IMG/VR virus record: IMGVR_UViG_3300009181_000033 | Coordinates: 233,895 to 297,894 of that record | DNA length: 64,000 bases | Direction: 5' to 3' (one strand) | Shown: one piece after another, positions 1,045 to 64,000 of the stretch | Position numbering within the stretch: the first letter of the stretch is position 1 | How the letters are laid out: every line of letters begins with the position of its first letter | Notes under the pieces: model-generated | Databases searched by the model: none | The model's input: only the letters and a program-made list of their open reading frames with translations | Told to the model about the DNA's origin: nothing | Translations under genes and position numbers: made by a program

Positions 1045-4000
1045 TTATTGGACCTGTGCGAGGTTGTTGGCCACGACGAAGTCAAGGCTGACGAACTCGA
1101 TGCTCTTCGTGGGTTGCACGAAGATCTTGCCGCGAATGGTGTTGTTCTCGATGTCGTCCTGGGTCGTCGTCGAGGAATCGATGATGACCTTGAATCTCTC
1201 GAGACCGCTGAGGGCTTGGATTCTCTGGAGGCGTGGTGTCACAGAGGCAGAGAAGCGGGCGAGTGTTGCAGCTCTGTTAGGTTCGAACAAGATGGTGTTC
1301 GCAATGTCTCTGACTTGGCGCCTAATCTCGATGAGAAGACGACGGACATTAACGCGATCTAGAGCGGAAGCGGCAACCTGCAGTGTCTTCTGGCCCCAGA
1401 CGACGATGCCGCCGCGAGGATTGGTACCGCTCTGAGCAGAACCTGGGAAGGCGACGATAGGATTGATTGAATTGTCATACAAGGAATCCATGTCCTTTTG
1501 CTTGAGTCTAACTCTTGGCTCGAGGGCTTCTTGTGGAAGTGCACCTCTGGTGAAGCCGGCGGGGGCAAACCAAGGATGACCAACAGCGTCATTCAAGGCC
1601 AGGGCTCCGAGAACGAGAACTGAAGGAGGGGCTTGCACGTTGATTCCCTTTGGATCTCTGTATAAGACATCCGGGAAATACGCTGCGGCGAAGGAGGAGT
1701 CGACTGTGCGATTCTTGAAGTTGTTGATTGTGTTAACAACAGAAGGAATCTGGTCTTCATCCTCAACCTGTTCGTAATTCTCGTCGAGTTGTTCAATGTC
1801 CATGACGTACATGGCATCGAATCTCTCTTCAACCGCCAAAATGGCCGCATCGGTGACGATCGGCTCTCTTATGCTTGGGATGGCTAGAAGCTGTATGTCC
1901 ATGTTGACAACATTCTTCATGATCTCAATGGCTTTCATGTAGGCCTTGACGTTCGGTCCATTTTCAGCTCCACGGTTGGTTGTGGCGCCCATATCGGCAT
2001 GAACAGCTGTATTGTTGATCTCTTCTGAGTCCTTGTCAAAAATATTGACACCGTTGAATCCGCCTTGCATGAAGGTCGTATATTTCACAAATGATTTATT
2101 TGTCAAGAAGTCATCGACCCTTAGGGCTCTTGTTTTATTTGTGTTGTTGGATATGATATTTCCATCCCTCACATAAACTGCGCTCTTCCATTGATTGGAA
2201 TCTGCGTCACCTGTGGTGCCAGTGACAACCTGCAGGTGTTCCAAGGAGAACATGTTGTTGCAGAACCTATCGGAATCGACGATGCCGAGCTGTGCTGTGT
2301 CCGGTTGTCCTGAATTGCTCCCGGTTAAGAATCCAGCAAAGTCTGGATAGTATTTGCCGAATGATTTGATTCCATCATTTGGAAGAATGGAGCCATTTTG
2401 CCTCAGGACAGTTTGTGGATGCTCAAATTGAACGCCCCAATAGAATTTGGGTTCAACGTTTTCCTTTGCCGAATCAACATCATTTATTGTTATCTTCTTT
2501 CTAAATGGTAGCGGAGGTGTGACCACGTGATTGAACACAGAATCGACTGTTAGCACTGCATTCTCTACTGCCTTCAATGAAGAAGAAAGTGGTGACGATC
2601 CAGAAGTGACCAAGTGATCAATTCCCCTGAATCCGATAGGCAACGCGACTGGGTCAACGAATCCATTTTCAACATCGGGGTGAACTTCAACCCTGACGTA
2701 ATTTGATCTGTTCTCGTAGTTTCCTTGTATGACCATCTTTTGAGCAGATTCTTCTCTGTCAAAATCGTAATATGCGTGAATGTCTCCAATCACCTTTGCA
2801 ATATAACGATCAGAAGATGGATCCAGATTTACACCTGAAAATGTCTCATTCGCTATCGTCTTCTTGTCCAAATCCCTGTCATTGAACTCCCTTAGAACAA
2901 CCGTAAAGTTGCCGTATTTGTTCATGGGATCATTGGAGGGTGTTAAATTTTCAATTGATATCTTGTATTGATAGGCTGGACCAACACCGTCATCGAGAGC
3001 ATGGAACCTAAAGAGATTAATGGGCTTACCACCAAATTTCTGAGAGATGAACCAAGGCGACTTGGCATGACCAAACCTGTCCTGGAAATTCTCATAATTG
3101 GGAACAATCCTATTGGGATCAAAGTAGTTCCTGGCAGTTGATCCGGTAACCAAGAACGCCGCCTGTTCTTTGCCGGTGCCAGTTGCACCTGCACCCGCGG
3201 TGCTTTCAACAACAGCCGTCCCTGTCACAGCTGCTAAAACGGGATGGATATCCCAATTCGCATAAAGATAGTGACCAGCTTCTTGTATTTTATTGGGGTC
3301 AGTGTTGAGCACATTAGCAAAATAATTGTTTGAAGTGACGTCAAAAGAAGCTGTTATGATATTAGGATAAGAAGCCGTCAAACCCTGATGTCCGTTTAGG
3401 AACATTGAGAATTCCTGTTTGGGACTGGCGTTGTTGCCAAGGACGACGTCGCCTAATTGCGATCCTTTTATGTTTGCTTGCAAAGCAACCAAAGCAGATC
3501 CGGGTTGTGCTGAAGAAATACCGGCCACCGAGGAAGAGAGCGTTAGGATGACTCCGCTTGGGGCCATTAAAACGCCCCTAACAATAGGAACGGCGGCGGC
3601 GTGAGACCCTGCAGCTGCGGCAACTGCTGACTTGTAACCTTGTATGCCGGCTTCGCTAAAGACAGTTGAGCCAGCAGATTCTGACATGAAACAACCAAGG
3701 AAGTAGGTTCTTCCCGCAACTCCCAAGTTGTTTGCAAATGGATTTCTCTCTTTCGTTCCAGGGACGCCCGAGAGCGGATTTGGAACATTGTCTCCAACAA
3801 CGAAACCGGCATTGGTGACAGTCCCGTCGTCAGTTCTTTCCCTGCCGTCACCAGTCCCAAGAACCCTGAGATAGGTTACAGCCTGGGCATTCCTTAACCA
3901 TTCAAACACTGCAAGAGGTCCGAATTTTTTGCCGTCTGTTTCACCAAACTTATTGTACCAATCTCCTATCGTGCCGACAGTGACCGGCACGAAGGCGGGC

Positions 4001-4119
4001 CCATTAAGGGCAGTGCCAACAATGCCTGCTGGCGTTCCGACGGGTGCTCGGGCCACTGGACCCGAGATGTCTATCTCTCTTGTTGTTACTCCTGCACTAC
4101 CGAATTTCAACTGTGCCAT
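1045..4119 (-). CDS. Contractile tail sheath protein (paralogue 2), T4 gp18-like
   Basis: N-terminal SAGVTTREID.S..GPAFVP..FG..YLRV; C-terminal PWFAPAG..RG, LY...INPI, WGQKTLQ..SALDRVNVRRLL, FEPN, P.KSIEFV.LDF. Confidence 0.95.
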   Translation of the reverse strand: MAQLKFGSAGVTTREIDISGPVARAPVGTPAGIVGTALNGPAFVPVTVGTIGDWYNKFGETDGKKFGPLAVFEWLRNAQAVTYLRVLGTGDGRERTDDGTVTNAGFVVGDNVPNPLSGVPGTKERNPFANNLGVAGRTYFLGCFMSESAGSTVFSEAGIQGYKSAVAAAAGSHAAAVPIVRGVLMAPSGVILTLSSSVAGISSAQPGSALVALQANIKGSQLGDVVLGNNASPKQEFSMFLNGHQGLTASYPNIITASFDVTSNNYFANVLNTDPNKIQEAGHYLYANWDIHPVLAAVTGTAVVESTAGAGATGTGKEQAAFLVTGSTARNYFDPNRIVPNYENFQDRFGHAKSPWFISQKFGGKPINLFRFHALDDGVGPAYQYKISIENLTPSNDPMNKYGNFTVVLREFNDRDLDKKTIANETFSGVNLDPSSDRYIAKVIGDIHAYYDFDREESAQKMVIQGNYENRSNYVRVEVHPDVENGFVDPVALPIGFRGIDHLVTSGSSPLSSSLKAVENAVLTVDSVFNHVVTPPLPFRKKITINDVDSAKENVEPKFYWGVQFEHPQTVLRQNGSILPNDGIKSFGKYYPDFAGFLTGSNSGQPDTAQLGIVDSDRFCNNMFSLEHLQVVTGTTGDADSNQWKSAVYVRDGNIISNNTNKTRALRVDDFLTNKSFVKYTTFMQGGFNGVNIFDKDSEEINNTAVHADMGATTNRGAENGPNVKAYMKAIEIMKNVVNMDIQLLAIPSIREPIVTDAAILAVEERFDAMYVMDIEQLDENYEQVEDEDQIPSVVNTINNFKNRTVDSSFAAAYFPDVLYRDPKGINVQAPPSVLVLGALALNDAVGHPWFAPAGFTRGALPQEALEPRVRLKQKDMDSLYDNSINPIVAFPGSAQSGTNPRGGIVVWGQKTLQVAASALDRVNVRRLLIEIRRQVRDIANTILFEPNRAATLARFSASVTPRLQRIQALSGLERFKVIIDSSTTTQDDIENNTIRGKIFVQPTKSIEFVSLDFVVANNLAQVQ

Positions 4120-4163: not shown

Positions 4164-7100
4164 TCACACGAACTCAACGCCACTATTTGTAACAATGAAA
4201 TCAATTGCGATGAACTCGACAACCCTTGTGGGAACAACGACTATTCTTCCATTCAGGCGATTGAGATCGACATCTTCTTGGGTGTTATTGCTCTCATTCA
4301 TAACAACCTGGAAGGCTTCTACGCCGGCCTGAATTTGAATGAGACCCAACTGGAAAGAAGCATCGGCAACAAACTTATTACGAACGGCTGGCGTGTTTTG
4401 CTCGAACACTATGTTCTTTGCAATACCGGAAATGATTCTCTTTATCTCCAGCATCAACCTTCTCACGTTGACCCTATCAAGAGCCGAACGATTAATTTGT
4501 AGCGTCTTTTGACCAAAGATAACGAAACCCATCTTGGGGAAAGTGGCTATCGGATTGATGCGTGATTCGTAGAGGCGGTCCCTGTCAGAAACATTTAGTC
4601 TCACGCCGACATTTGTTACGAAGTCCAACGCTGCCCTGTTGAAACCAGCAGGGGCAAACCAAGGATAAGAAACTCTGTCGTTAAAGCCCAAAGCACCCAA
4701 GGCAGCAACTGAGGCCGGAACCCTTACTTTTCTCTTGTTGACGGTGTCATCGACAAAGACATCAGGATAGTATGTCGCAACGTAATTATTGTCAATGGTC
4801 CTTGCATCAAGTTGATTTGCTGTGCGCACTATGTTTGGTTTGACACTTGAATCATCATAAATGACTGCGTCATCATCGCTATATGAAGGAATGTCCATCA
4901 CGTGCATGGCCATTCCATAATCCCTAACCTTCTGCATGGTTCTGTCATTTATGTATACATCCCTGATACCTGGTATACAGATGATGTTCGTGTTCGCCTC
5001 GAGCGGGTTGGTCATTATGTCAACGGCGGACAAGTAAGAATTAACACCGTTGTTGTCTTCGTTAAAGCCAGACGGATTGACAGTGCCAAAACCTTCTGGA
5101 TAGAAAGTTGGTGATGCACCTGAATCGAAAGAAACTGACTTATCATTCAATCGACGAGCGTTTCTATCCAAGAAATTGGTTCCATCAAATCCACCATACA
5201 TGAAATTGGTGAACTTGGCATAAGCGGAGAACCTATTGAATTCAGAGGCGGTCCCTTGGGACAGCAACGTTGCGAAAGTAATTCTGTCTATCTGAGAAGT
5301 CCCATCATTGTTTAACACGTACGTGCTAGAGTCAAGTTTGGCATTTCTCACGTAGGCTGCCTGCCTCATGTGACTGTTCACCGAACTTGTGAGATCTGTG
5401 ATTGAAGAGTTGTAGAACGCGACATTTGCCAATGAGAACTTATTATTGTTCATGTCGTCGGCAAAAGATCCCGTCAACAACGAGTCTAGTTTCGATATTC
5501 CAACAAACTTGGTAAATGACTCGAGCAGAGAATTTTTCTCTGTGACAAGGTTGGCGTTTAACAACATGTTGTTTTTGACATCATTGGTGACGTCAGAACC
5601 AGTGCTGCTTCTCTCAAACTTAACGCCCCAATAGTAGGCTGGATTTGCTTGCTCTGCAGCACCAGGCTCACCGGTAAACGTTGGGGTTTGTTTCACTTCA
5701 CCTCTTGTAACCTTGAACCTAAGGGGGAGAGGTGGGAGGAAAGAACCAGACAGTGATGTTCCGGCAGAAGAAGAACAATGCAGTCTTGAAGCAGAAGGAT
5801 CGAGAGCACCATCGTTGGTCAAGGGGCTGGTTTTCAACAACTCTGGACCCCTGAATCCGAACGGAAGAGCGGTGGTTGGAATTTGCTCTTTTTCGTGCTC
5901 TTCGCTCATCTCAATTCTGACGTATCTTGAATTATTTGCATACTTGCCAAGGGCAACGATTCTCTTCTCGTTAGGATCAAGAGAATCAAAGTTATAGAAA
6001 ACTTTTCTATCTCCGATCATCTTGGCTATGTAATTTGGAGCCTTTGGATCCAAGGTGACATTTGAAAATTGTTCGAGAACCATAGGGCTCACGTCGGTAT
6101 CGTTCCAGTCCCTTATTTGAACATTGAACGTTCCATACTTGTTTGCTTCATTTGCAGACGCCTTGACGTTTGTGATAGAAATCTTGTAAAGGCTGTTTGC
6201 ATATTGACCATCGTCCAACGACTCGAACCTAAAAAGATCGTATTCTTTTGTTCCATACGGTTGTGATATAAAGAATGTGCTCTTGGGCGTGGTGTATCTC
6301 GTGTTGTAAGAACCAAACACCTTGCTAAATGGATTTCCGTGAAGACCGTCAGCGGAAGAACCGCTGAGTATCGCCACAGAGTTTCCTGCATCAACGTATG
6401 CAATTGTGTGATCAACAGCAAAATCTGCGTGTAGATAATGTTGTTCTTGATAGAACTTGTCAGGATCCCTGTTTAGAACCTTGGCAAAATAATCCTTGTC
6501 TGTTGGGTTGAATGAAGCGGTTAAAACCTTCACGCCGGAAAGTCCATCCATTTTTGAGAATGAATCACCTATGGAAGAAGAGATGATGAGTTTAAATTTC
6601 CCATCGGAGTGCATTGGGTGATCGTCGTTATTAACAACCTTCACTGCCACCAAGCTAGAATTGGATCCCGTAACCATGATTCTTGCTGTAGAGGGCGTCA
6701 TGATGAGGCCTCTTATCAAGTCGGCAGATGTAGAATTTGTTATGGTGTCATTGTTGGTAAAATCAGCAACTGCAACGTCTTCATTGGGTCCAAACGTATG
6801 TTTGGCAGCCAAAAACTGAACCCTTCCAGTAGTTGAATCGTCCAAAACAAAGCCGGCATTATTGACAACACCTTTTGTCAAAGTATCACTCAGGTGTTGA
6901 GCTGTAGTGTTGGCTCCTGCACCCAGCACCCTGAGATATGTCAAGGATGATCTGTTCTTTAAAAATTCGCAAACCGCGTATGGTCCAAAATGCTTTGGAT
7001 CAAGATTGCCAAAGTTTTGCACAAATTCATTAAAATTTGCTACAGTAAATGGCACAAAGGCGGGGCCTTTGTTTGATGTTCCTATGATTCCTGCAGGGAC

Positions 7101-7184
7101 GCCTACTGGTCCAGATGTCCTGGGTGATGATAAATCTATTTCGCGTTCATAAAAATTTGGCGACTTAAAGGTCTGCTCTGACAT
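4164..7184 (-). CDS. Contractile tail sheath protein (paralogue 1), T4 gp18-like
   Basis: SPNFYEREIDLS..KGPAFVP; PWFAPAGFNR; INPIATFP; FGQKTLQ..SALDRVNVRRL; PTRVVEFIAIDF; SD AAGGAG. Confidence 0.95.
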   Translation of the reverse strand: MSEQTFKSPNFYEREIDLSSPRTSGPVGVPAGIIGTSNKGPAFVPFTVANFNEFVQNFGNLDPKHFGPYAVCEFLKNRSSLTYLRVLGAGANTTAQHLSDTLTKGVVNNAGFVLDDSTTGRVQFLAAKHTFGPNEDVAVADFTNNDTITNSTSADLIRGLIMTPSTARIMVTGSNSSLVAVKVVNNDDHPMHSDGKFKLIISSSIGDSFSKMDGLSGVKVLTASFNPTDKDYFAKVLNRDPDKFYQEQHYLHADFAVDHTIAYVDAGNSVAILSGSSADGLHGNPFSKVFGSYNTRYTTPKSTFFISQPYGTKEYDLFRFESLDDGQYANSLYKISITNVKASANEANKYGTFNVQIRDWNDTDVSPMVLEQFSNVTLDPKAPNYIAKMIGDRKVFYNFDSLDPNEKRIVALGKYANNSRYVRIEMSEEHEKEQIPTTALPFGFRGPELLKTSPLTNDGALDPSASRLHCSSSAGTSLSGSFLPPLPLRFKVTRGEVKQTPTFTGEPGAAEQANPAYYWGVKFERSSTGSDVTNDVKNNMLLNANLVTEKNSLLESFTKFVGISKLDSLLTGSFADDMNNNKFSLANVAFYNSSITDLTSSVNSHMRQAAYVRNAKLDSSTYVLNNDGTSQIDRITFATLLSQGTASEFNRFSAYAKFTNFMYGGFDGTNFLDRNARRLNDKSVSFDSGASPTFYPEGFGTVNPSGFNEDNNGVNSYLSAVDIMTNPLEANTNIICIPGIRDVYINDRTMQKVRDYGMAMHVMDIPSYSDDDAVIYDDSSVKPNIVRTANQLDARTIDNNYVATYYPDVFVDDTVNKRKVRVPASVAALGALGFNDRVSYPWFAPAGFNRAALDFVTNVGVRLNVSDRDRLYESRINPIATFPKMGFVIFGQKTLQINRSALDRVNVRRLMLEIKRIISGIAKNIVFEQNTPAVRNKFVADASFQLGLIQIQAGVEAFQVVMNESNNTQEDVDLNRLNGRIVVVPTRVVEFIAIDFIVTNSGVEFV

Positions 7185-16544: not shown

Positions 16545-18416
16545 TCAGATGACATTCATGTCGAGAACGGTGACGGTGCCGTAGAAGTCCGAGCGGACCA
16601 TCTTCTTGCCGTAGCGGGTCATCACACCCTTACGAGGTGTGAAATCCTCAGGCGCGAAGATTGTAGGGGTCACAATCAGGGGCACGTAAGGAGCGTAGAC
16701 GTATCCGGTCTCGAGGTAGCTGCCACCCTTGTAGCCGACGAGGATCTTGTTGCGAACGAAGTAAGGATCCTTGTAGACGGTGAAGCGGTTGGAGAGGGTG
16801 CCGATGGCCTCTGCACCGATGGTGAAGGGGCTAGCGACCTGGCCCTCGCCGTCCATGGAGAACTTGGGCTTGTAGAGAACTGAGCTCTCGAGGATGGTGG
16901 CGACATCGGGTCCGGTGACCATGAAGTTCGCAGAACCACGGAGTGTCTTGCGGTGGATGGTGTTGGCGACGTCGATGATGGTCTCGATGAGAGTCTCGTA
17001 CCACTCGCGGACGGTGCCTGTGAACTGAGGGCCGATCTGGTATTGGTCGGCTAGTGTTACGCGGCCACCGGTTGTCTTGTTGACGAAGCGACCGGGTGAG
17101 CGGCTCCAATAGTAGTTGGCGCCATTGGCTTGGCTGACTAGGTCGTTGAGGATCTCACGGTCGATCTCGAGGGCGATCTGCTCTGAGAGGATTGAGGTGA
17201 GCTCCACCTCGGCGTCCATGCTGTGGTACGCGTTGAGGTCCTGAGCGAGCTCGGGTGACCACTTGGCGCGTAGCTTGCGGGTCTCGGCGGTGATGCTGAT
17301 GGCCTCGATCTTGATGTCGATCTCTGGGATGACTGGTGAGGGGGTCGAGCCGAAGTCGGACTCGAAGGAGGGGACGGTGATGGTGGCACCGCTGGTGCTG
17401 TCCACGTTGAGCTTTTGGTCAAGAACGAATGTGAACTTGCCGGTAGCGGTGGGAGTAAAGGCAGCAACGCCGTTGGCACCCTTCACGAGCATGAGAACGT
17501 GAGTGCCGTTGAGGGCATTTGGTGTAAATGTGAAGGCCGAGTTGTCCCAGTCACCGCGCTTGTTGAGGCGGCGAAGGTTCTTGATGCCTGTGCCGCCTTG
17601 GTAGGTGTCGCCCCAGGCGTCGGCGCCGGTGATGCCGGCGTGGAGAGCGATCTGGTTGACGGCGAGGCGGTCAATGGTTGAACCGATTGAGTCAAGCTTG
17701 ACAATCTCGAACATCGCATCGAGCTGACCGAGGTCGAGCGCAGTCTCAACCTGGGCATCGAAGTCGGCGTAGCGGGCGTTAGAACCTGAGAAGTCGAGGG
17801 CTGATCTGAGAACGCCGCCTGCAACCCAAGCTCCTGTACCGCTCCATGAACCGGAGGCGGCGACAGAGGAGTTTGTGAGGTCGACTGTTAGGTTCGAGCC
17901 GGTAACGCGTGAGTAGCCGACGTTAACGAGGTCGTATTGGCCGCCGGTGGCTAGAGAGCCGCTCTGAACGCCTCTGCCGGTGGGGTTGTTGTAGATTGAC
18001 TGGCCACGGGTGTAGGTCGAGGTTGAGTCGGACCCTGGGACGCCAACATTGCTACCGTATGTGTAGTCGAGGTAGAAGATGAGGCCTGATGGGAGACTCA
18101 TTGGTTGAATTGAGACGAGCTCGTTGGCAACGAGGCCACCGAATACGCGGCGAACGATTGGGAACGCGATGTTGGAAAAGCCCTGGATCTGACCGGAGCC
18201 GGCGAGGTTGCCACCGCCGGTTGAAAGGCCATTGCTCTCCTTAAGGACCTGGGCAGCCTGGTTCTCTAGGAGCTGTCCCATCATCTCACGCTTCTGGCCG
18301 TCGAGGCCACGGAGGAGGCCTGTGCGGCTCCACTTCTCGGTGAGGCGTGCGCGCTCGGCACCGACGTGCTTCTCGCGGATGCCCTGAGCTAACTGATCTA
18401 AACTAAAATACTTCAT
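16545..18416 (-). CDS. Major capsid protein, T4 gp23-like
   Basis: LLENQ, PIVRRVF..L.ANELVSIQPMSLPSGLIFYL, A.TRKLRAKWSPELAQDLNAYH..DAE.EL..ILSE.I.LEIDREI, GYVYAPYVPL, F.PRKGVMTRYG. Confidence 0.97.
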   Translation of the reverse strand: MKYFSLDQLAQGIREKHVGAERARLTEKWSRTGLLRGLDGQKREMMGQLLENQAAQVLKESNGLSTGGGNLAGSGQIQGFSNIAFPIVRRVFGGLVANELVSIQPMSLPSGLIFYLDYTYGSNVGVPGSDSTSTYTRGQSIYNNPTGRGVQSGSLATGGQYDLVNVGYSRVTGSNLTVDLTNSSVAASGSWSGTGAWVAGGVLRSALDFSGSNARYADFDAQVETALDLGQLDAMFEIVKLDSIGSTIDRLAVNQIALHAGITGADAWGDTYQGGTGIKNLRRLNKRGDWDNSAFTFTPNALNGTHVLMLVKGANGVAAFTPTATGKFTFVLDQKLNVDSTSGATITVPSFESDFGSTPSPVIPEIDIKIEAISITAETRKLRAKWSPELAQDLNAYHSMDAEVELTSILSEQIALEIDREILNDLVSQANGANYYWSRSPGRFVNKTTGGRVTLADQYQIGPQFTGTVREWYETLIETIIDVANTIHRKTLRGSANFMVTGPDVATILESSVLYKPKFSMDGEGQVASPFTIGAEAIGTLSNRFTVYKDPYFVRNKILVGYKGGSYLETGYVYAPYVPLIVTPTIFAPEDFTPRKGVMTRYGKKMVRSDFYGTVTVLDMNVI

Positions 18417-49941: not shown

Positions 49942-51440
49942 TCCGGATCCCTATCTCTTTGAGAAAGAACTATCGTAAACAAATTAACATAACAAGTGGT
50001 TCCTCTGTCATCAATAAAAGTTTTACCAATGAAAAAAACTCTATTTTTTTCATTGGGATCACTTCCAACATCATTTTGCATATAACCAAAATCAACAATG
50101 TCCAATTTAGAAACTGTATTGTCAACAATTTCAAAGAACTGCCCTAAGATATTATTATTTCTAGAAGTTTTTTCAAAAACAACATCTTGACTAGGATAAT
50201 TTTTTAGGTCTGCCATTAATTTTGACATCATTAACGTCATTTCATTATCACCCCATGAGGGATAGTCGCCTAGAAAATATTTTGTTGGTATGTTTTTTAT
50301 GTCTTTTTTGTTTGCAACAATCGAATCACTGACTTTAACCAAAGGTGGCAAATATCTAAAATTTTCTAAATTACTTAATTTGCTATCGCTAAAAAGAGAA
50401 TCGATAGAATTCAATGTTGGAGGAGCCATCGTAAGCTGCCTAAGTCGTCGTGCAGATATTTGGTTTAAATCAAATTTTATTTCTGAGTCAAATTTGCTGT
50501 TTTCAGGAGCCTTTGGGTAGATACTGAAATTATCGTCCTCAAACAATCTATCTATTGTAGAAATTATTTTTAGGTCTTGAAAGTTGTCAAATGAAGAAGA
50601 CAAAATATCAGTTATTTGACTAGAAAAATTTGCAACTTCTATTTCTTCTCTGTGTAATTTGCCACCCAACACCGGGCCCTCTAGTGATAAAGAAGACGTT
50701 ATTGAGCCTATTGTGTTAGGTGTTATTTTCAAAATCTGTCCACTTGCTATATTTTCGGTGCTTTTCGAATCCAAAAAAACAACATTGGCCTGTTGTGTTG
50801 CAAAAACACTGGGCCCTTCACTGGAGCTGATTAAAGAAATAGCCCTGACTATACACTTGGCTAAGGACTGCGCATCCAATCCATCCTTAGTTCCTATGTA
50901 CGCTTTGTAGGGTTTACCAGTTAGACCGCTACATCCAGCAAATGAACCGGTAATGAATTCTGATGGGAAGTCAGGTTTTATTAAAATGCTGGCCGTGAAT
51001 GCCCCCGCGCCATCACAATAAATAAACCCTTTTTCATCGTTGGCTTTATCGTACTTTAAAAAATTAAAAGTCTTTATGGTCCTTCCGTGATAATAAGAAT
51101 ATGCAGATAATTTGCCATTTATGAATTCACCTTGTGCTTGACTAGATCCTTCGCCAAAAGGCAAATTGATTCCAAGGTTTAAGTTTTGTTTTTTAAATGG
51201 AACTAATTTACCTTCGTCGTTAGCTTCAAAAACTATTTGATCCTGTGGCAAATTTGCTGCTTCAAAATAAAGCTTGCTTGTAGGATCTTCATGCCCATTT
51301 TCGACGTCTGGCAGATAAGAAACATCTGCATCAGTAAAAGTGACATAGGAGACATTAAACGTGCCTTCGGACATTTGTCTACGACCTTCGGACGTTATTA
51401 TTGCATCAATGATTCTGGATTTATTATCGAGTATTCCCAT
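49938..51440 (-). CDS. Virion structural protein
   Basis: MGILDNKSRIIDAIITSEGRRQM..F.VSYVTFTDADV.Y..FEA, paralogous to 40061-40810. Confidence 0.6.
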   Translation of the reverse strand: MGILDNKSRIIDAIITSEGRRQMSEGTFNVSYVTFTDADVSYLPDVENGHEDPTSKLYFEAANLPQDQIVFEANDEGKLVPFKKQNLNLGINLPFGEGSSQAQGEFINGKLSAYSYYHGRTIKTFNFLKYDKANDEKGFIYCDGAGAFTASILIKPDFPSEFITGSFAGCSGLTGKPYKAYIGTKDGLDAQSLAKCIVRAISLISSSEGPSVFATQQANVVFLDSKSTENIASGQILKITPNTIGSITSSLSLEGPVLGGKLHREEIEVANFSSQITDILSSSFDNFQDLKIISTIDRLFEDDNFSIYPKAPENSKFDSEIKFDLNQISARRLRQLTMAPPTLNSIDSLFSDSKLSNLENFRYLPPLVKVSDSIVANKKDIKNIPTKYFLGDYPSWGDNEMTLMMSKLMADLKNYPSQDVVFEKTSRNNNILGQFFEIVDNTVSKLDIVDFGYMQNDVGSDPNEKNRVFFIGKTFIDDRGTTCYVNLFTIVLSQRDRDPE

Positions 51441-51482
51441 GTCAATTACCACACTAATTTATGTTTAAACAAAACATTATTG

Positions 51483-58456: not shown

Positions 58457-60445
58457 ATGAATTTAAAAGAACCAATTTTTGTAAATCCCAATAAGCTAAT
58501 AGAAGAAAATTCTGAGATTATTTTTGTTGCTGACGTGTTCGTTGAGGATTATGTCGGTGGAGCCGAATTAACGTCGGATGCAATCATCCAGGAATCACCA
58601 TTTGTGGTGCAAAAGCTACACTCAAAAGATGTAAATCTTGCAACTTTACAACAGGGAATTAATAAATTTTGGATATTTGGAAATTTTGCACAACTCAATC
58701 CAGAATTAATTCCTTCAATTGTGGCAAATTTGAAATACTCCGTCCTGGAGTATGACTATAAATACTGCAAATTTAGATCACCTGAAAAACACGTTGCAGC
58801 CGAAGGCACGTGCGATTGTGAAAGTAAAATCAATGGAAAATTGGTTTCCGCTTTTTACTTTGGATCCCAGGCTTTATGGTGGATGTCAGAACAACAAAAA
58901 AACAAATACACCAACTTATTTCCGTTTCTGCTGGAGAAAGATAATGTAGTTTTATCCAGCGTATTTTCCAAAGAAACTCTTGGAAAATTGAGACACTTGA
59001 GGGAGCAATCAAATCCAAAAAAGGGTTGGATTGTTTTAGGATCCACTTCTTGGGTGAAGGGTTTTGAAAATGCAAAAAAATGGTGTGAAGACAATCACAA
59101 AGAATATGAAGTTGTATGGAATTTGAGCTATGATGAAGTGCTAGCAAAACTTTCCACCTCTGAGGGCTTTGTCTACCTACCGGCCGGAGCCGATACGTGT
59201 CCAAGAATGGTGATTGAAGCTAAGTTATTGGGTTGTGAGCTTCACATGAACGACCATGTTCAACATGCAAAAGAAGAGTGGTTCAATACAGACGATTTAG
59301 ATTCTATCCAAGATTATCTCTACACAGCGCCAGACATATTCTGGAAGGCAATCAAATTGATCAAAAATCATAAACCAACCATTAGCGGTTACATCACTAC
59401 TTACAATTGTATTGCACAGGAATATCCATTTGAAAGAAGTATTAATTCCATGTTGCAATTTTGTGATGAGGTCTGTGTGGTCGACGGAGGTTCCACCGAT
59501 ACCACACCCGAGACTCTCTTTGACTTACAGATGAAGAACTCTCCAGAAGAGTCACGAGTCAAATTGATCGAGGACCTGAAGAGAGAGAAGGGTGAGACTC
59601 TTCCTATTTCCGTTCTCCACGAGGCACTCAACGGTATTTCACGAGTCAAAGTGAAGACGATATCCCGTGATTGGACTCATCCTCGACATGCAGTTTTTGA
59701 TGGCATGCAGAAGGCAGAAGCACGAAAGATGTGTACTGGCGAGTTCTGTTGGCAAATGGATTCTGACGAAATAGTACACGAGAAAGACGCTCATAAAATC
59801 ATTGAATTGTGTCAAAATATTCCAAAGAACGTCGACATTGTTTGTCTCCCGGTTGTGGAATATTGGGGAGGGCCCGAAAAAGTTAGACTTGACATTCAGC
59901 CTTGGAAATGGAGACTCAGCAGAAATTCTTCACACATCACCCATGGAATCCCAGTCGAACTTCGCCGCAATGATGTAAATGGTGACCTCTATGCACTCGA
60001 AGGTACCGATGGTTGTGACATGATCAACACAGAAACGGGTGAGAGATTGCCACATGTTACGTTCCACAACACAGAGACAGAAACAATTCGTAGAGCAGCA
60101 GTTTTAGGTGATGAGAATGCCATTAAAGCCTATCAGGATTGGTTCAATAAAGTTGTTGAAAATCTTCCTGGTGTATTTCATTATTCATGGTATGACATTC
60201 CGAGAAAAATTCGAACCTATAAGAATTATTGGACAAAACACTGGAATTCCCTTTACAACAAATCAATGAAAGACACAGCAGAATCAAACATGATGTTTGA
60301 TTTACCGTGGTCAGAAGTTTCTGAAGAGATGATAGAAGATTTGGCAAAAAATCTAAAAGAAAAAACAGGCGGTTGGATTTGGCACGGCAAATGGAAAGGC
60401 CAGCAAATTCCCCACCTGACAATTAACACAACGGAGCCAAAATGA
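58457..60445 (+). CDS. Two-domain glycosyltransferase (GT-B-like + GT2/GT-A)
   Basis: GGAELT, KG, DTCPRMVIEAKLLG; then ISGYITTYN..VVDGGSTD...QMDSDE. Confidence 0.85.
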   Translation: MNLKEPIFVNPNKLIEENSEIIFVADVFVEDYVGGAELTSDAIIQESPFVVQKLHSKDVNLATLQQGINKFWIFGNFAQLNPELIPSIVANLKYSVLEYDYKYCKFRSPEKHVAAEGTCDCESKINGKLVSAFYFGSQALWWMSEQQKNKYTNLFPFLLEKDNVVLSSVFSKETLGKLRHLREQSNPKKGWIVLGSTSWVKGFENAKKWCEDNHKEYEVVWNLSYDEVLAKLSTSEGFVYLPAGADTCPRMVIEAKLLGCELHMNDHVQHAKEEWFNTDDLDSIQDYLYTAPDIFWKAIKLIKNHKPTISGYITTYNCIAQEYPFERSINSMLQFCDEVCVVDGGSTDTTPETLFDLQMKNSPEESRVKLIEDLKREKGETLPISVLHEALNGISRVKVKTISRDWTHPRHAVFDGMQKAEARKMCTGEFCWQMDSDEIVHEKDAHKIIELCQNIPKNVDIVCLPVVEYWGGPEKVRLDIQPWKWRLSRNSSHITHGIPVELRRNDVNGDLYALEGTDGCDMINTETGERLPHVTFHNTETETIRRAAVLGDENAIKAYQDWFNKVVENLPGVFHYSWYDIPRKIRTYKNYWTKHWNSLYNKSMKDTAESNMMFDLPWSEVSEEMIEDLAKNLKEKTGGWIWHGKWKGQQIPHLTINTTEPK

Positions 60446-60813
60446 AAGAGAACAAATTGCATCAAGCAATATCGAAGCTTTTGACTGACCGCTTGGCAAA
60501 AAATAATGGAAAAAGATTGAATAGAGAAACTTGTACGGAAATATATCAAGACATATTTTTTAGCATAACGGAGCTATTCAAAGAGTCATCCACACCGCTT
60601 GGTAACGAAGCTGCAAATCTATTGGCACAGATGTATTATGATTGTGTGACACTGCAGACATCTTCTGGCAATTCAGAATTGGATCCAAGCATATTTGAAA
60701 AGAGGGCGTCGACAGACAACGTTCCTACAAAGGAATTAGCATTATTGGCAACAATGATGAACGGTACTCCCTTTGCACCTGTGTTTATATCGGCAGTCAA
60801 GAGGCGATCGTGA
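60442..60813 (+). CDS. Hypothetical protein in GT operon
   Basis: ATGA/GTGA-coupled on both sides. Confidence 0.65.
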   Translation: MKENKLHQAISKLLTDRLAKNNGKRLNRETCTEIYQDIFFSITELFKESSTPLGNEAANLLAQMYYDCVTLQTSSGNSELDPSIFEKRASTDNVPTKELALLATMMNGTPFAPVFISAVKRRS

Positions 60814-61544
60814 ACTCAATAGAGGATGTGAAAATTTGCGTCGCCATTTGTAATTACAATCACTCTCGCTATCTTAAGGAATCCATACAGAGCATTGTGG
60901 ATCAAACACACAAAAATCTTGATATTGCCGTTATTGATGATGGCTCAATCGACCAAGGAAATGTAAAGGACTTGGTTAAATCTTTTAACGACGAAAGAAT
61001 TAGGCTCATTCTTTTACCTACGAACAAAGGAAAATGGAATGCACTAAACACTGCCTTTTTGGGAACAGATGCAGTGATATGTACTTCTCATGATGCCGAC
61101 GATGTTTCTCTGCCGTGGAGATTAAAAGCCCAGATTAATTGCATGATTGAGACGAAGACTGTCCACAATTTGTGCGGCTTCATCTCTTGTTGGTCTGATC
61201 AAGAGGTGATAGATTACGCAACAAAGATTGAACTGCCTTCGGAAATGAAGGTAGCATCTGGCGATGCGGTCACGAAGAGCGTCCTTCAAGGTTTCGACAC
61301 TCCTGGAATCAACCATTATTTTACAGGCAATTTTGAAACTGCTGGTGTTAGTTCAATGTTCTATAAGAGAATTTGGGATTTAGGAATTAGATTTTTACCG
61401 CCTGGCAAAAACGTTAGGGTACTCATGAGTGAAGATTCTGATTTTAATTTTAGGCTCACGACAAGCCATCGTTCAACTTCTCTGTTATTAGAAACACCAT
61501 ATCTTTATAGAAGAAACACCAGCACAAACAAGGAAGAAAAATGA
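60810..61544 (+). CDS. GT2 glycosyltransferase
   Basis: ICNYN..YL.ESIQS..QT...IDDGS.D, NKGK..ALN, HDADD, SEDSDF, YLYR. Confidence 0.92.
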   Translation: MNSIEDVKICVAICNYNHSRYLKESIQSIVDQTHKNLDIAVIDDGSIDQGNVKDLVKSFNDERIRLILLPTNKGKWNALNTAFLGTDAVICTSHDADDVSLPWRLKAQINCMIETKTVHNLCGFISCWSDQEVIDYATKIELPSEMKVASGDAVTKSVLQGFDTPGINHYFTGNFETAGVSSMFYKRIWDLGIRFLPPGKNVRVLMSEDSDFNFRLTTSHRSTSLLLETPYLYRRNTSTNKEEK

Positions 61545-62293
61545 GCACTTCTTTTAAAATAGTTGTTCCCGTGTATAATTCGGAAAATTGGATTGAAAAA
61601 TGCCTATCTTCAATCAAGAATCAAAAACATAAAGAATTTGAATGTGCCATATACAATGATTGTAGCACCGATTCAACAGGCGAAAAAATAGAAGATTTTA
61701 TTAAAGAATATGGTGATGAAAGATTTACAGTCGTTCACAATTCTTCTAACAAGAAAACTCTGTTTAATCTCATAGATGGATGCCAAACACTTAAATCAAA
61801 AGAAGAGCCAGAGTCAGTTTTGGTGGTAGTCGATGGAGATGACTCTTTGTTCAGCGAATATTCTTTGAGCTTGGTCGATAACGTATATCAAAAAACTGGA
61901 ACGTCTTTGACATATGGTTCATTTGTTCATTGGCCTACAGGAGAGATTTCTAATTTTTCTAGGGAATTCCCGAATGAAGTAAGGGCAAATAATAATTACA
62001 GAAAATTCCCGTTCGTTTCCAGTCATCTTAGAACCTACAAGAGCTATCTTTGGAATTCCATATTGGATTCAGACCTTAGAGACACAGATGGAGAATATTT
62101 TAAGGTAGCTTGTGATGTTGCAACAATGATACCAATGTTAGAAATGGCTGGTGGAAATTTTATACACATTCCCAACATTCTATATGTTTATAATAGATGG
62201 AATCCACTGAGCGATGACGTCATTAATTCTTCAGAGCAAGGAAGAATAGATAGATTAATAAGGTCTAGAAAAAAATACGAGCCGTTTTTATGA
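61541..62293 (+). CDS. GT2 glycosyltransferase
   Basis: IVVPVYN..WIEKCL.S..NQ..NDCSTD, VDGDD, SHLRT, LYVYN. Confidence 0.92.
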   Translation: MSTSFKIVVPVYNSENWIEKCLSSIKNQKHKEFECAIYNDCSTDSTGEKIEDFIKEYGDERFTVVHNSSNKKTLFNLIDGCQTLKSKEEPESVLVVVDGDDSLFSEYSLSLVDNVYQKTGTSLTYGSFVHWPTGEISNFSREFPNEVRANNNYRKFPFVSSHLRTYKSYLWNSILDSDLRDTDGEYFKVACDVATMIPMLEMAGGNFIHIPNILYVYNRWNPLSDDVINSSEQGRIDRLIRSRKKYEPFL

Positions 62294-63057
62294 GAGATTT
62301 TTATAGTTTTGCCATGTTGGGAAAATATGGCAGACTTGGCAATCAAATGTTTCAAGTAGCTACAGTCGCATCCCTTGCAAGATTAAAGGGGTGCGATTTA
62401 GTTTTACCCAATAATGAAAACACAATCATTAGAAAATGCTTCAATATCCCATGCATTGACGCAACAGAAGATCATTCCTTTTTAACAAAAGGAAGATGGC
62501 AAGAGCCAAGCTTTTGTTATTCTAGACAAATATTGGATCTTCCGACCAATGTTGATATATTGGGATATCTCCAATCGTGGAGGTATTTGTTTGATGAAAA
62601 ATATATTAGACAAATATTTTCTTTCGATAAAAGTGTCATCGAAAGATGCAAGAATAATTTGCCAATAGGAGAATTAATATCTTTACACGTGCGAAGAGGA
62701 GATTATCTAAAATTTCCAAAAGTTTTCCCATTGCCATCAGTTGAATATTATGAAGATGCAGTGTCTTCAATAAAGTCTGAGAGACAGGATGCAATACCAG
62801 TAATTTTCACCGATGACAAAAAATGGTGTGAAGAAAATTTTCCAAAAATGCAAATTTTTTCCACTTCAGAAATCGATGATTTGTGTATGATGTCGTTATG
62901 CAAACATCATGTGATTGCCAATAGTAGCTTTAGCTGGTGGGGGTCTTGGTTGGCAAAATCAGAAGAACAAATAGTGTATTCACCGCATGCATGGTTTGGT
63001 CCAGAAGGACCACAGGACACACAGGATTTATTGCCACCCTGGTACAGGAGATCTTAA
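62290..63057 (+). CDS. Alpha-1,2-fucosyltransferase (GT11)
   Basis: GRLGNQMFQ, GYLQS, HVRRGDY, FTDD..WC, IANSSFSWWG. Confidence 0.92.
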   Translation: MRDFYSFAMLGKYGRLGNQMFQVATVASLARLKGCDLVLPNNENTIIRKCFNIPCIDATEDHSFLTKGRWQEPSFCYSRQILDLPTNVDILGYLQSWRYLFDEKYIRQIFSFDKSVIERCKNNLPIGELISLHVRRGDYLKFPKVFPLPSVEYYEDAVSSIKSERQDAIPVIFTDDKKWCEENFPKMQIFSTSEIDDLCMMSLCKHHVIANSSFSWWGSWLAKSEEQIVYSPHAWFGPEGPQDTQDLLPPWYRRS

Positions 63058-64000
63058 TGCTATTAGATTTAGAAAAAATTGTTGAAGTTTTTAACATTCC
63101 ACAAACAGGTGTTTTTCACGTGGGTGCTCACCACGGCCAAGAAATGGAAAGGTATAAAAAATTAAAACTTAAGAATGTTGTGATGTTCGAACCATCTCCA
63201 AAGACATTTGAAATACTACAAGAAAACCTAAAGGATGAAGAAGTTACATTGGTAAATTTGGGCCTGGCGTCAGAAGACTCTGAACTAGAGCTCTATGTTG
63301 AATCAGCAAATTTAGGACAGTCTAATAGTTTGCTCAAACCAATGCTCCACACATCACAATATCCAGACATAAAATTTGAATCAAAAGAAAAAGTGAACCT
63401 CACTTCTTTGGACAAGTGGTGCGAAAAAAATGAAGAAAAATCCATTGCCAACATAATGTCTTTAGACGTTCAAGGCTATGAGCTTGAAGTATTACTGGGT
63501 GCACAAAAAACTTTGAAAAACATTGACATCATTATATGCGAGGTCAATAGAAGTGAACTATACAAAGATTGTGCTTTTGTAATTGAAATAGACATCTTTT
63601 TAAGACACCATGGCTTCAGGAGAGTGGCAACAAACTGGGTCGGAAAAACTTGGGGTGACGCAGCATATGTAAAGGAGAACTTTGTGCAAAGTGTGTCGAA
63701 GATTCCATCCATCGACATAATAGACAAATCATTTTCACACTCTAAGAGTGTTTTGGGATTTGATTCAGCTTGCCTATTGCCTACTTCTAAATTTAATTGG
63801 AATAGAGAGAAGACAGGTGATTTCGATTTTGTTGTTATAACCGATGAATCTGTCGCCACCAAGACTGAAAAAAGAAAAATTGCTTGGCTTTTGGAACCTA
63901 ATGACATATCAAATCATGCATACAACTATGTAGAAAATCACCAAAATGATTTTGTCGGAATAGTTTCTCATGACATAAATTTTGTTCAAAAAATTGAAAA
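63057..64000 (+). CDS. FkbM-family methyltransferase fused to a further, probably GT, domain (3' partial; not in ORF track)
   Basis: TAATG overlap; MLLDLEK..GVFHVGAHHGQE..FEP..SNSLL..LD..MSLDVQGYELEVLLG..EVN..WGDAAY; frame stays open through KIAWLLEP to the window end. Confidence 0.88.
   Translation, partial: MLLDLEKIVEVFNIPQTGVFHVGAHHGQEMERYKKLKLKNVVMFEPSPKTFEILQENLKDEEVTLVNLGLASEDSELELYVESANLGQSNSLLKPMLHTSQYPDIKFESKEKVNLTSLDKWCEKNEEKSIANIMSLDVQGYELEVLLGAQKTLKNIDIIICEVNRSELYKDCAFVIEIDIFLRHHGFRRVATNWVGKTWGDAAYVKENFVQSVSKIPSIDIIDKSFSHSKSVLGFDSACLLPTSKFNWNREKTGDFDFVVITDESVATKTEKRKIAWLLEPNDISNHAYNYVENHQNDFVGIVSHDINFVQKIE

Follow-up and report, generated by a model that had tools for sequence, protein, structure and literature searches.

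The fucose-glycan operon

The window analysed here is a 64,000-nt stretch (positions 233,895 to 297,894) of IMG/VR record IMGVR_UViG_3300009181_000033, the circular contig of an aquatic jumbo phage. The last 123 nt of the contig equal its first 123 nt, giving a genome of roughly 297.8 kb. The end of the window holds the first third of an operon of at least 16 kb and 17 genes that runs across the circular junction. Successive genes overlap by 4 nt, or by 1 nt as TAATG. In this phage the operon is not inside the structural block but diverges from a ClpP-helicase-PhoH block.

The lead gene, at 58457..60445 (+), encodes a 662-aa protein (GT662) and is the most conserved gene of the module. An AlphaFold2 model of the whole protein has a pLDDT of 93.8 (94.4 for the N-domain), and together with Foldseek searches it confirms the predicted fusion of a compact GT-B domain (residues 1-305) to a GT-A/GT2 domain (residues about 306-662), in which Pfam detects GT2 at residues 313-371. 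The GT-A domain is closest in predicted fold to the peptide S-glycosyltransferases SunS/ThuS (E 5e-10), and a profile search also finds the flagellin O-GlcNAc transferase GmaR. The GT-B domain is closest to GtfC/Gtf3 (E 1.3e-5, TM 0.51-0.58), with GtfA/B also listed, enzymes that glycosylate streptococcal serine-rich repeat adhesins. The margins of these matches are narrow, as TarS, chondroitin polymerase, OtsA and T4 DNA alpha-glucosyltransferase are also among the Foldseek neighbours. GT662 has at least 79 IMG/VR homologues at 48-69% identity, whereas the same kind of search found only one close sheath relative, at 50%.

GT662 is followed by p123 (60442..60813, +), a small 123-aa protein without a Pfam family whose homologues lie in 26 related loci, always inside the operon. 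Two family-2 glycosyltransferases follow. GT2a (60810..61544, +; PF00535, E 2e-18) is an accessory gene present in only 5 related loci, while GT2b (61541..62293, +; PF00535, E 2e-20) belongs to the conserved core, with homologues in 64 of 79 related loci, usually next to GT662. The GT11 gene (62290..63057, +; PF01531, E 1.6e-24), of the alpha-1,2-fucosyltransferase family, is another accessory gene, present in 6 related loci. The last ORF (63057..64000, +) starts with an ATG at 63057 in a TAATG overlap and encodes an FkbM methyltransferase domain (PF05050, E 4.7e-22). It runs off the window, crosses the circular junction and ends in a GT10 fucosyltransferase domain (PF00852 Glyco_transf_10, E 6e-8), 487 aa in all, confirming and completing the FkbM fusion that had been predicted from the window alone.

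Beyond the window end, the operon encodes GDP-mannose 4,6-dehydratase (Gmd; E 1e-131) and a Fcl-like epimerase/reductase, which together make GDP-L-fucose, with a sugar kinase fusion and an NDP-sugar nucleotidyltransferase. In total the operon carries GT662, four GT2s, GT11, the FkbM-GT10 fusion and several proteins without an assigned function. No TM-like segments occur in the 6 window and 13 junction ORFs of the operon. Among 435 downstream ORFs in about 55 relatives, 426 have none and none has three or more, so there is no Wzx, Wzy, WaaL, WecA or Gtr-type component. In three relatives (L037, L040 and L042) the gene directly upstream of the operon, on the same strand, is a tail-fibre protein (PHROG E 1e-23 to 1e-31).

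A serine motif in virion proteins

The tripeptide [S/T]-[G/A/S]-S recurs in outward-facing virion proteins, and the original prediction holds as an observation: the operon domains are as described and each of its hand counts is reproduced exactly. The motif occurs 11 times in one tail sheath paralogue (4164..7184, −), all in the inserted outer domains (residues 172-645), and 8 times in the second (1045..4119, −); PHROG profiles identify both as tail sheath. The two sheaths are 33-38% identical, and three motif sites align across five sheaths. An 847-aa LamG-like virion-module protein (36195..38738, −) carries 13. This protein has no Pfam or PHROG hit, but the nearest Atlas clusters carry Laminin_G_3. 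A 430-aa protein of the tail/baseplate block (38753..40045, −) carries 8, shares its C-terminal ~95 residues with the 847-aa protein (BLASTP E 6e-6) and belongs to a virus-only family without a Pfam domain. A 504-aa protein at the edge of the structural block, next to PhoH (49938..51452, −), carries 5, and its 15 homologues in related loci total 37 against 19.2 expected. By contrast, Mre11-Rad50 has 2, the terminase 1, the portal 1 and PhoH 0.

The T4 gp23-like major capsid protein (16545..18416, −; PHROG major head protein) carries 4 motifs, at residues 152, 172, 188 and 210 (QSGSL, VTGSN, ASGSW and FSGSN), all in an insertion that T4 lacks. The site at 210 is conserved as SGS/SGS/TAS/SAS in four lineages, inside an insertion absent from T4, S-T4 and CZ01. 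The capsid count alone is not significant (4 vs 2.2 expected, p 0.18). Several other probable virion proteins are not enriched or are depleted, including those of 1566 aa (1 vs 5.1), 836 aa (0) and 603 aa (2 vs 1.9).

Composition does not account for the excess, although the motif was defined after looking at the sequence. Whole-protein shuffles expect 2.2 in the 8-motif sheath (p 0.002), 3.3 in the 11-motif sheath (p <0.001), 4.0 in the 847-aa protein (p <0.001), 2.2 in the 430-aa protein (p 0.003) and 1.7 in the 504-aa protein (p 0.029). Four of 57 proteins reach p<=0.003, where about 0.2 are expected. Pooled, the five rich proteins give 45 motifs against 14-18 under local shuffles in 10-100-residue blocks (0 of 2000 shuffles reach 45), while the other 52 proteins give 36 against 40-42. 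With a preceding hydrophobic residue the excess is eightfold (31 vs 3.7). TGS, SSS and TAS are the top three of the 64 tripeptides over S/T/G/A, whereas other orders such as GSS, SSG, GGS, SGG and SGT are not enriched. Codons at the motif vary, so the signal is at the protein level. A preference for T-x-S over S-x-T in the window (22 vs 8) is not significant in relatives (27 vs 19).

Conservation across relatives

The excess is retained in two unrelated protein families. All 120 sheath orthologues examined are enriched (on average 9.9 vs 3.8), with six conserved, degenerate sites, as are all 120 orthologues of the 847-aa protein (13.7 vs 3.7), with about 12. At conserved sites position 1 toggles S/T, position 2 toggles G/A/S and position 3 is Ser in 92-121 of about 120 sequences, while the flanks vary. 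Several conserved sites nevertheless have invariant flanks (HLSSSY, GTGSF), which looks like an ordinary structural element.

The enrichment is lineage-specific. The observed-to-expected ratio for the hydrophobic-flanked motif is 0.9 in T4 and 0.3 in Vibrio phage CZ01, but 3.0, 4.8 and 5.8 in Mel-JY01, Flavobacterium phage immuto and the relative L002. Virion proteins of T4 and CZ01 show no overall excess, although enrichment occurs sporadically elsewhere, as in T4 gp48 (7 vs 2.9) and a S-T4 structural protein (7 vs 1.4). Relatives lacking glycosyltransferases had been proposed as a test of the sequon reading. Every relative with an enriched sheath (Mel-JY01, immuto) also carries a GT cluster, but the enriched lineages are all related to each other, so this co-occurrence is not phylogenetically independent.

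Possible function of the glycan

The interpretation offered in the original prediction, that the motif is an O-glycosylation sequon and that this myovirus coats its capsid, sheath and baseplate with a fucosylated, O-methylated glycan, is partly supported. The nature of the glycan is well supported by GT11, GT10, FkbM, Gmd and the Fcl-like enzyme. Its attachment to virion proteins is plausible but tentative, and the claim that this motif is the acceptor site is weaker still, as the support for both is circumstantial and there is no chemical evidence of any glycoprotein. The most likely function is cytoplasmic O-glycosylation of the phage's own outward-facing virion proteins during assembly. In this model the conserved core enzymes (GT662, GT2b) would put the first sugars on the nearly invariant third serine of hydrophobic-[S/T]-[G/A/S]-S-hydrophobic motifs in the sheath insertion domains, the capsid insertion, the neck and the LamG-like tail proteins. 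The lineage-variable enzymes would then build a fucosylated, methylated outer glycan that differs between related phages. The gene content, the soluble nature of the pathway, its conservation pattern and the enrichment and degenerate conservation of the motif are demonstrated by the analysis, whereas the acceptor, the modified residue and the order of enzyme action are inferred. The lack of membrane components, the fold neighbours of GT662, the adjacency to tail-fibre genes in relatives, and the enrichment, degenerate conservation and lineage specificity of the motif favour this view, and a well-conserved first enzyme fits a conserved, phage-encoded acceptor better than variable host surface glycans. 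Against it stand the narrow margins of the Foldseek matches, the position of the operon outside the structural block in this phage, the invariant flanks of several motif sites and the sporadic enrichment elsewhere.

Alternatively, the operon might remodel a host envelope glycan (LPS core or O-antigen, capsule, or another lipid-linked polysaccharide) during infection, which could block superinfection or stop progeny from sticking to debris. The soluble phage enzymes would act at the cytoplasmic face on host lipid-linked intermediates, with the host supplying the flippase and ligase, and the serine motif would be unrelated. The gene content (GT2, GT4, GT11, Gmd, Fcl, methyltransferases, aminotransferases) is that of O-antigen or capsule clusters, the outer part of the cluster is hypervariable between relatives, as surface-antigen loci are, and ordinary O-antigen glycosyltransferases are also soluble or peripheral. 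Similar clusters of jumbo cyanophages have been read this way (Iyer et al., 2021; PMC7824862), and a 2026 preprint counts phage GTs as envelope-associated. However, no initiating phosphoglycosyltransferase, flippase, polymerase, ligase or Gtr-type protein is found among more than 450 operon ORFs, the lead enzyme is a core gene across a diverse clade that presumably has diverse hosts, the operon sits beside tail-fibre genes in several relatives, and this reading leaves the lineage-specific motif unexplained. Host-envelope remodelling is somewhat less likely than virion glycosylation but remains possible. Another soluble acceptor, such as a non-virion phage protein, a host protein, or a free oligosaccharide or small molecule, is compatible with a soluble pathway and with the ClpP, helicase and PhoH neighbours, but nothing points to a specific candidate, and neither the motif nor the tail-fibre adjacency would be explained; this reading is unlikely. 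Glycan hypermodification of phage DNA, in the manner of T4 glucosyl-hmC or the recently described multi-sugar 5hmC modifications, is very unlikely. Phage GTs often act on DNA (Pyle et al.), the pathway is soluble, and T4 alpha-glucosyltransferase is a fold neighbour of the GT-B domain (rank 18, E 1.2e-4), yet a pathway with at least 8 GT domains, GDP-fucose synthesis and sugar methylation is far more elaborate than known DNA glycans. No hydroxymethylase, TET/5mYOX or DNA methyltransferase lies in the window or the junction locus, although this search leaves out about 220 kb of the genome and precursor genes cannot be excluded.

Whatever the operon does, the motif itself might be a fold-level signature of the outer beta-rich domains of this lineage, a hydrophobic strand end followed by a tight small-residue turn and the next strand, conserved for folding or subunit packing and not a modification site. 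This reading concerns the motif alone, so its likelihood is not additive with those of the readings above, and it is slightly more likely than not. Of the motifs, 67% follow a hydrophobic residue and 57% are followed by one. Many sites have an invariant Gly in the middle and invariant aromatic or His flanks, and G-S is a classical two-residue hairpin sequence. Three sheath sites are positionally conserved at 33-38% identity, as any structural element would be, and large fibre-like ORFs of relatives show the excess equally in both orientations. On the other hand, the virion proteins of T4 and CZ01 are equally beta-rich yet show no excess, and other S/T/G orders are not enriched. At several sites the middle residue swaps freely among G, A and S, which a positive-phi turn would not tolerate, while the third Ser almost never becomes Thr. 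The motif also recurs in at least five proteins with no detectable homology beyond that noted above between the two sheaths and between the 430- and 847-aa proteins.

Related glycosylation systems

Glycan and NDP-sugar clusters are present in jumbo phages and 'moraphages' (PMC7824862; PMC12619734), large aquatic myovirus-like genomes with T4-like virion genes, PhoH, a uvsW-type helicase and Clp. Glycosyltransferases are core genes there, with four core GT orthogroups in moraphages. These papers leave the function open or assign it to host polysaccharides, and neither reports a virion motif. No identifiers shared between this contig and the moraphage set were found. Virion glycosylation by phage-encoded GTs is reported for mycobacteriophages, where capsid and tail proteins are decorated in the bacterial cytoplasm (Freeman et al., 2023, cited in PMC12619734). 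In that system one to a few GTs reportedly sit next to the structural genes and the glycans are at the C-termini of the capsid and tail-tube subunits, whereas the operon described here has at least 17 genes, makes its own sugar nucleotide and is paired with candidate sites that form an internal motif in sheath, capsid insertion and tail proteins.

The chlorovirus PBCV-1 capsid glycosylation machinery (A064R, A111/114R, A075L, A061L, plus viral GMD and GMER) resembles the operon in gene content. Both have virus-encoded, soluble, multi-domain glycosyltransferases, both fuse or pair a methyltransferase with GT domains, and both encode GDP-mannose 4,6-dehydratase plus an epimerase/reductase for GDP-fucose, giving a fucose-containing, methylated glycan. 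PBCV-1 is a eukaryotic virus whose glycans are chemically established and N-linked to Asn in atypical sequons of one capsid protein, while here the host is bacterial and the candidate sites are Ser in several proteins, inferred from sequence alone.

Serine-rich repeat adhesins of streptococci and lactobacilli undergo cytoplasmic, stepwise O-glycosylation of serines in S-x-S-type sequences by soluble GT-B and GT-A enzymes, including two-domain fusions (GtfA/B, GtfC/Gtf3, dGT1). The similarity of the GT662 N-domain to GtfC/Gtf3 is at fold level only (8-12% identity), and no GtfA/GtfB-type initiating pair was identified here. The adhesin acceptors are long tandem Ser-rich repeats of secreted proteins, not dispersed single motifs in folded virion domains. 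A further analogy, of substrate pattern alone, is offered by the autotransporter heptosyltransferases TibC/AAH (BAHT family), a system with a single GT-B enzyme, ADP-heptose and one substrate family. There, multiple serines, but not threonines, on the surface of a beta-rich protein are hyperglycosylated in the cytoplasm (PMC4358343), which matches the near-invariant Ser, rarely Thr, at position 3 of the phage motif.

Genomic context of the glycan operon

The window forms the last 64 kb of the 297,894-bp IMG/VR contig UViG_3300009181_000033. The last 123 nt of the contig (window 63878-64000) are identical to its first 123 nt (1-123 of the junction locus, L098), so the assembly is circular at about 297.8 kb. 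The genes are those of a divergent T4-like myovirus: two ~1000-aa tail-sheath paralogues, gp15- and gp13-like neck proteins, a gp23-like capsid protein, a prohead protease, a portal, a large terminase, a fused Mre11-Rad50, a primase, PhoH, a helicase, and ClpP. The nearest named phages, at about 40% terminase identity, are Microcystis phage Mel-JY01, Flavobacterium phage immuto, and an uncultured 484-kb phage; a literature search found no paper on Mel-JY01. Megablast of 24 kb of the window against GenBank phages returned no match, and tblastn of the 662-aa lead protein of the operon (GT662) against the same set likewise found nothing, so no annotated close relative exists. The phage resembles the recently described "moraphages", which are aquatic, reach 307 kb, and have four core glycosyltransferase orthogroups of unresolved function (PMC12619734).

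The original prediction assigned to the operon a GT-B and GT-A fusion, two GT2s, a GT11 fucosyltransferase, and an FkbM fusion, and all of these domain calls are confirmed. GT662 models with pLDDT 93.8 and has a compact GT-B domain (residues 1-305) and a GT-A domain. The FkbM ORF that runs off the window starts at 63057, crosses the circular junction, and ends in a GT10 fucosyltransferase domain. Behind it, on the same strand and tightly packed, come two unknown proteins, a kinase-aldolase fusion, a nucleotidyltransferase, another GT2, three more unknown proteins, GDP-mannose 4,6-dehydratase (Gmd; PF16363, E 1e-131), and an adjacent Fcl-like epimerase/reductase (PF01370). The operon continues for another ~9.4 kb past the window end and ends before a PD-(D/E)XK nuclease gene, and a further GT-B-like ORF starts at about L098 10542. 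A second pattern search intended to extend the junction locus returned the same locus. By gene content, the phage makes GDP-L-fucose and carries two fucosyltransferase-type domains and a sugar methyltransferase, so the predicted fucosylated, O-methylated glycan is well founded.

In the window the operon lies about 7 kb from the last structural-block gene and is divergently oriented. A tandem array of the 10-nt unit AATTAGATAC (10.5 copies; also readable as a 33-nt unit with 3.4 copies and 93% matches) fills the divergent intergenic region just upstream of GT662 (58319-58442). Related loci L044 and L051 have arrays of different units at the same place and most relatives have none, ruling out a conserved control element.

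The operon in related phages

GT662 has at least 79 homologues in IMG/VR at 48-69% identity and always heads a co-directional operon of 10 kb or more. A Pfam census of 140 downstream ORFs found GT1/GT4 in 33, GDP-mannose-dehydratase-type enzymes in 15, methyltransferases in about 14, Polysacc_synt_2 in 13, and aminotransferases and UDP-glucose dehydrogenases in a few. GT662, the family-2 glycosyltransferase GT2b (64 of 79 loci), the small protein p123, and often Gmd are conserved, while GT11, FkbM, the second family-2 enzyme GT2a, and most junction ORFs are rare or unique, occurring in 0-6 loci. The architecture is therefore a conserved core plus a hypervariable periphery.

A hydropathy scan found no ORF with three or more TM-like segments among 435 downstream ORFs of relatives, of which 426 have none, and found no TM-like segment among the 19 operon ORFs of this phage. 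In three related loci (L037 6007-9894, L040 7621-9813, and L042 6221-9769), tail-fibre genes with a long-tail-fibre distal-subunit C-terminal domain sit immediately upstream of GT662 on the same strand. These fibres are themselves rich in the S/T-small-S/T pattern, at two to three times expectation.

Fold affinities of GT662

The best PDB matches of the predicted GT-A domain are the glycocin peptide S-glycosyltransferases SunS and ThuS (E 5e-10), followed by TarS, chondroitin polymerase, RmlT, and ppGalNAc-transferases. A sequence-profile search also finds the flagellin O-GlcNAc transferase GmaR. The predicted GT-B domain (pLDDT 94.4) best matches GtfC and Gtf3, with GtfA/B also listed, which are the cytoplasmic enzymes that glycosylate serine-rich repeat adhesins. 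Its top PDB matches are 4w6q, 3qkw, 9hu9, and 3rhz, with TM 0.51-0.58 and 8-12% identity, and OtsA, SenB, and T4 DNA alpha-glucosyltransferase are also on the list. Although both domains sit nearest to enzymes that work on protein or peptide acceptors, the margins are small and identity is only about 10%, making this a lead and not proof.

A serine motif in virion proteins

The observation behind the original prediction, an excess of [S/T]-[G/A/S]-S in outer virion proteins, is confirmed and extended, and all of its hand counts are reproduced. Five proteins (the two sheaths and the 847-, 430-, and 504-aa proteins) hold 45 motifs against 13.4 expected from whole-protein shuffles. Correction for composition, set beforehand as a possible refutation, leaves the excess in place: under local shuffles in 10-100-residue blocks the expectation is 14-18, and 0 of 2000 shuffles reach 45, so a compositional or low-complexity artefact is rejected. 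The other 52 proteins hold 36 against 40-42. Among the 64 tripeptides over S, T, G, and A, the top three are TGS (10 vs 1.8), SSS (13 vs 3.1), and TAS (7 vs 1.6), while GSS, SSG, GGS, SGG, and SGT are at expectation; simple clustering of small residues therefore does not explain the signal.

The residue before the motif is hydrophobic in 67% of cases, against a 33% background, and the residue after is hydrophobic in 57%. The four-residue pattern hydrophobic-[ST][GAS]S occurs 31 times against 3.7. A DNA-level motif is rejected because the codons vary. Domain duplication is rejected as the source, since only the two sheaths and short ends of the 847/430 and 249/504 pairs are homologous. Pfam and PHROGs do not name the 847-, 430-, 504-, 603-, 836-, or 1566-aa proteins, and "LamG" for the 847-aa protein rests on Atlas neighbours only.

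Not all likely virion proteins take part. The 836- and 603-aa proteins and the portal are at or below expectation. The 1566-aa ORF in the tail block (42716-47416) is depleted (1 vs 5.1 expected) and might be an internal protein such as a tape-measure-like protein; the moraphage study reports that no tape measure was identified in that lineage (PMC12619734).

Conservation of the motif and controls

[quoted passage not shown] So do Mel-JY01 (sheath 11 vs 3.1, gp13-like 5 vs 0.9) and immuto (sheath 10 vs 4.1). Two adjacent full-length sheath paralogues, 33-38% identical (1045-7184), are kept as an orthologous pair in L002 (9983-16056), suggesting a tail sheath built from, or alternating between, two subunits. 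Three sheath sites align across five sheaths at 33-38% identity. One MCP site reads SGS/SGS/TAS/SAS in four lineages, inside an insertion that T4-type capsids lack.

All 120 database orthologues of the sheath are enriched (mean 9.9 vs 3.8), as are all 120 orthologues of the unrelated 847-aa protein (mean 13.7 vs 3.7, minimum ratio 2.25). At the conserved sites, position 1 toggles between S and T (for example S76/T41 and S63/T57), position 2 toggles among G, A, and S (for example S68/G39/A11 and A64/G55), position 3 is Ser in 92-121 of about 120 sequences and rarely Thr, and the flanks vary. This is exactly the degeneracy originally proposed. Some sites, however, have invariant Gly and invariant flanks (GTGSF, HLSSSY) and look like ordinary structural elements.

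The expectation that any beta-rich virion protein would show the motif is rejected for T4, whose virion proteins give 26 vs 28.9, and for Vibrio phage CZ01, which gives 10 vs 15.6; cyanophage S-T4, whose GT content was left out of the comparison, gives 31 vs 22.7. For the hydrophobic-flanked pattern, the observed/expected ratios are 0.9 in T4, 0.3 in CZ01, 2.1 in S-T4 (a weak twofold excess), 3.0 in Mel-JY01, 4.8 in immuto, and 5.8 in L002. The signal is therefore lineage-specific and not a general property of beta-rich virion proteins.

Mel-JY01 and immuto, chosen as possible relatives without glycosyltransferases, both turned out to carry glycan clusters. Mel-JY01 has several GTs and a 1226-aa FkbM protein, and immuto has five GTs, aminotransferases, an epimerase, and a "pilin glycosylation protein". 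This is co-occurrence, but the lineages are related, so the test is not independent. The 580-aa sheath group (L003-L006), on contigs of undetermined GT status, is not enriched. Two points weaken the case. The T-x-S over S-x-T bias (22 vs 8 in the window, p 0.016) is not significant in relatives (27 vs 19), and fibre-like ORFs next to GT662 in relatives are enriched three- to fourfold in both orientations.

Candidate acceptors of the glycan

Three results rest on the analysis itself: a self-sufficient pathway, soluble by hydropathy, for a fucose-containing, methylated glycan with a conserved core and a variable periphery; a conserved, ordered, degenerate Ser motif concentrated in domains, inferred to face outward, of several unrelated virion proteins of this lineage; and fold affinities of the lead enzyme to protein-directed glycosyltransferases. 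The link between them, including the acceptor, the presence of any glycan on virion proteins, and the enzymes' activity on the motif, is inferred. The original interpretation, that the motif is an O-glycosylation sequon and that the phage coats its capsid, sheath, and baseplate with a fucosylated, O-methylated glycan, is thus supported only in part.

O-glycosylation of virion proteins is the single most likely acceptor model, although it is held tentatively and at less than even likelihood, and the motif is its best candidate site, which remains more doubtful still. Remodelling of host envelope glycans is the published default for such clusters (PMC7824862) and remains a serious, possible rival. 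Like host surface-polysaccharide (O-antigen/capsule) clusters, the operon combines GTs with sugar-nucleotide synthesis genes, but an initiating phosphoglycosyltransferase, Wzx/Wzy or ABC exporter, ligase, or GtrABC was not found among the ORFs scanned. The missing membrane steps, which the host could supply, and the conserved lead enzyme weaken this reading but do not exclude it. A purely structural origin of the motif is, taken alone, still somewhat more likely than not. DNA glycosylation is unlikely: no linked synthesis of hydroxymethyl-pyrimidine (hydroxymethylase, or methyltransferase plus TET-like oxygenase) was found in the 64-kb window or the 10.9-kb junction locus, a search that leaves out the remaining ~220 kb of the genome.

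A bolder reading, unlikely on present evidence but not excluded by it, is that a widespread clade of uncultivated aquatic jumbo myoviruses, together with their cultivated cousins Mel-JY01 and immuto, uses a conserved two-domain glycosyltransferase to O-glycosylate a defined sequon, hydrophobic-[S/T]-[G/A/S]-S, on capsid, sheath, neck, and tail proteins. A hypervariable set of enzymes would then diversify the outer fucosylated, methylated glycan. This would be a sequon-directed glycan coat on a bacterial virus, built wholly in the cytoplasm, and the first phage glycosylation sequon to be defined.

Virion glycosylation is established only for some actinobacteriophages and for chloroviruses, and the large glycan clusters of aquatic jumbo phages are usually assumed to alter the host surface. 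If the motif is the acceptor, an abundant, uncultivated clade, represented in metagenomes by more than 1,300 sheath homologues and at least 79 GT662 loci, coats its particles with variable fucosylated glycans. Such a coat would bear on phage stability, adhesion to mucus or particles, evasion of grazers or defence lectins, and host recognition, and would give phage biology its first predictive sequon. The two cultivated relatives, which show the same sheath enrichment and carry glycan clusters, make the question directly testable. If the motif is only structural, it is still a lineage-specific sequence signature of outer virion domains that needs an explanation.

Comparison with known glycosylation systems

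In logic and gene content the closest system is chlorovirus capsid glycosylation, which too has viral GMD and GMER, multi-domain soluble GTs, a sugar methyltransferase, and a fucosylated, methylated glycan. Here, GDP-fucose synthesis is encoded by the Gmd and PF01370 genes, GT662 has two domains, FkbM is fused to GT10, and no operon protein has a TM segment. The candidate sites are Ser, whereas the chlorovirus glycans are N-linked on the major capsid protein.

In host type the closest is mycobacteriophage virion glycosylation (Freeman et al., 2023), where the sites are reportedly C-terminal. As in the actinobacteriophage systems, the glycosyltransferases are phage-encoded (a GT-B/GT-A fusion, four GT2s, GT11, and GT10). 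However, the motifs lie in internal insertion domains (MCP residues 152-210 and sheath residues 172-645) rather than at the C-termini of capsid and tail-tube subunits, the tube gene being outside the window.

In enzyme fold and in Ser-directed cytoplasmic chemistry the closest are the serine-rich-repeat adhesin pathway and the TibC/AAH heptosyltransferases, which modify Ser and not Thr (PMC4358343). The Gtf3/GtfC-type compact GT-B enzyme is matched at fold level only. The motifs are dispersed single sites with conserved positions, not tandem Ser-rich repeats, and neither a GtfA/GtfB initiating pair nor accessory Sec export was recognised by Pfam in the operon, five of whose ORFs carry no assignment. 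On sequence and predicted structure alone, without the defining chemical evidence, this system is not a demonstrated member of any of these, and where site architecture could be tested (C-terminal sites, tandem repeats) it does not match. If the reading is true, it would be a case of phage virion glycosylation distinguished by a first candidate sequon in a widespread uncultivated clade.

Other features of the virion and replication genes

The stretch at 16800-19800 is a GC island. The capsid gene has 59% GC (GC3 0.75) and the 3' two-thirds of the adjacent 689-aa ORF has 54-57%, against 41% for the window, and the capsid genes of L002 and Mel-JY01 are also 8 points above their surroundings. Codon adaptation of a highly expressed gene or foreign origin are possible causes. 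Two tandem paralogues of 171 and 178 aa (20586-21646; 54% identical, 13.5% Ser) lie between the prohead protease and the 689-aa ORF upstream of the capsid gene and are candidate scaffold or decoration proteins.

Homing-endonuclease-type genes lie next to core virion genes. A 483-aa HNH protein (14993-16444) lies directly downstream of the capsid gene, and a 306-aa paralogue (30-950; 39% identity over 314 residues) lies beside the sheath genes. An HNH domain (residues ~187-280) also sits inside an unusually long 1042-aa portal ORF (23880-27008), whose portal domain starts near residue 588. Mre11/SbcD and Rad50/SbcC are fused in one 1046-aa ORF (29762-32902), with the SbcD-like part covering residues 1-351 and the SbcC-like part covering residues 272-1044. 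A single tRNA-Gln (anticodon TTG; 11255-11328, minus strand) lies in a 434-nt gap within the neck-to-head gene block.
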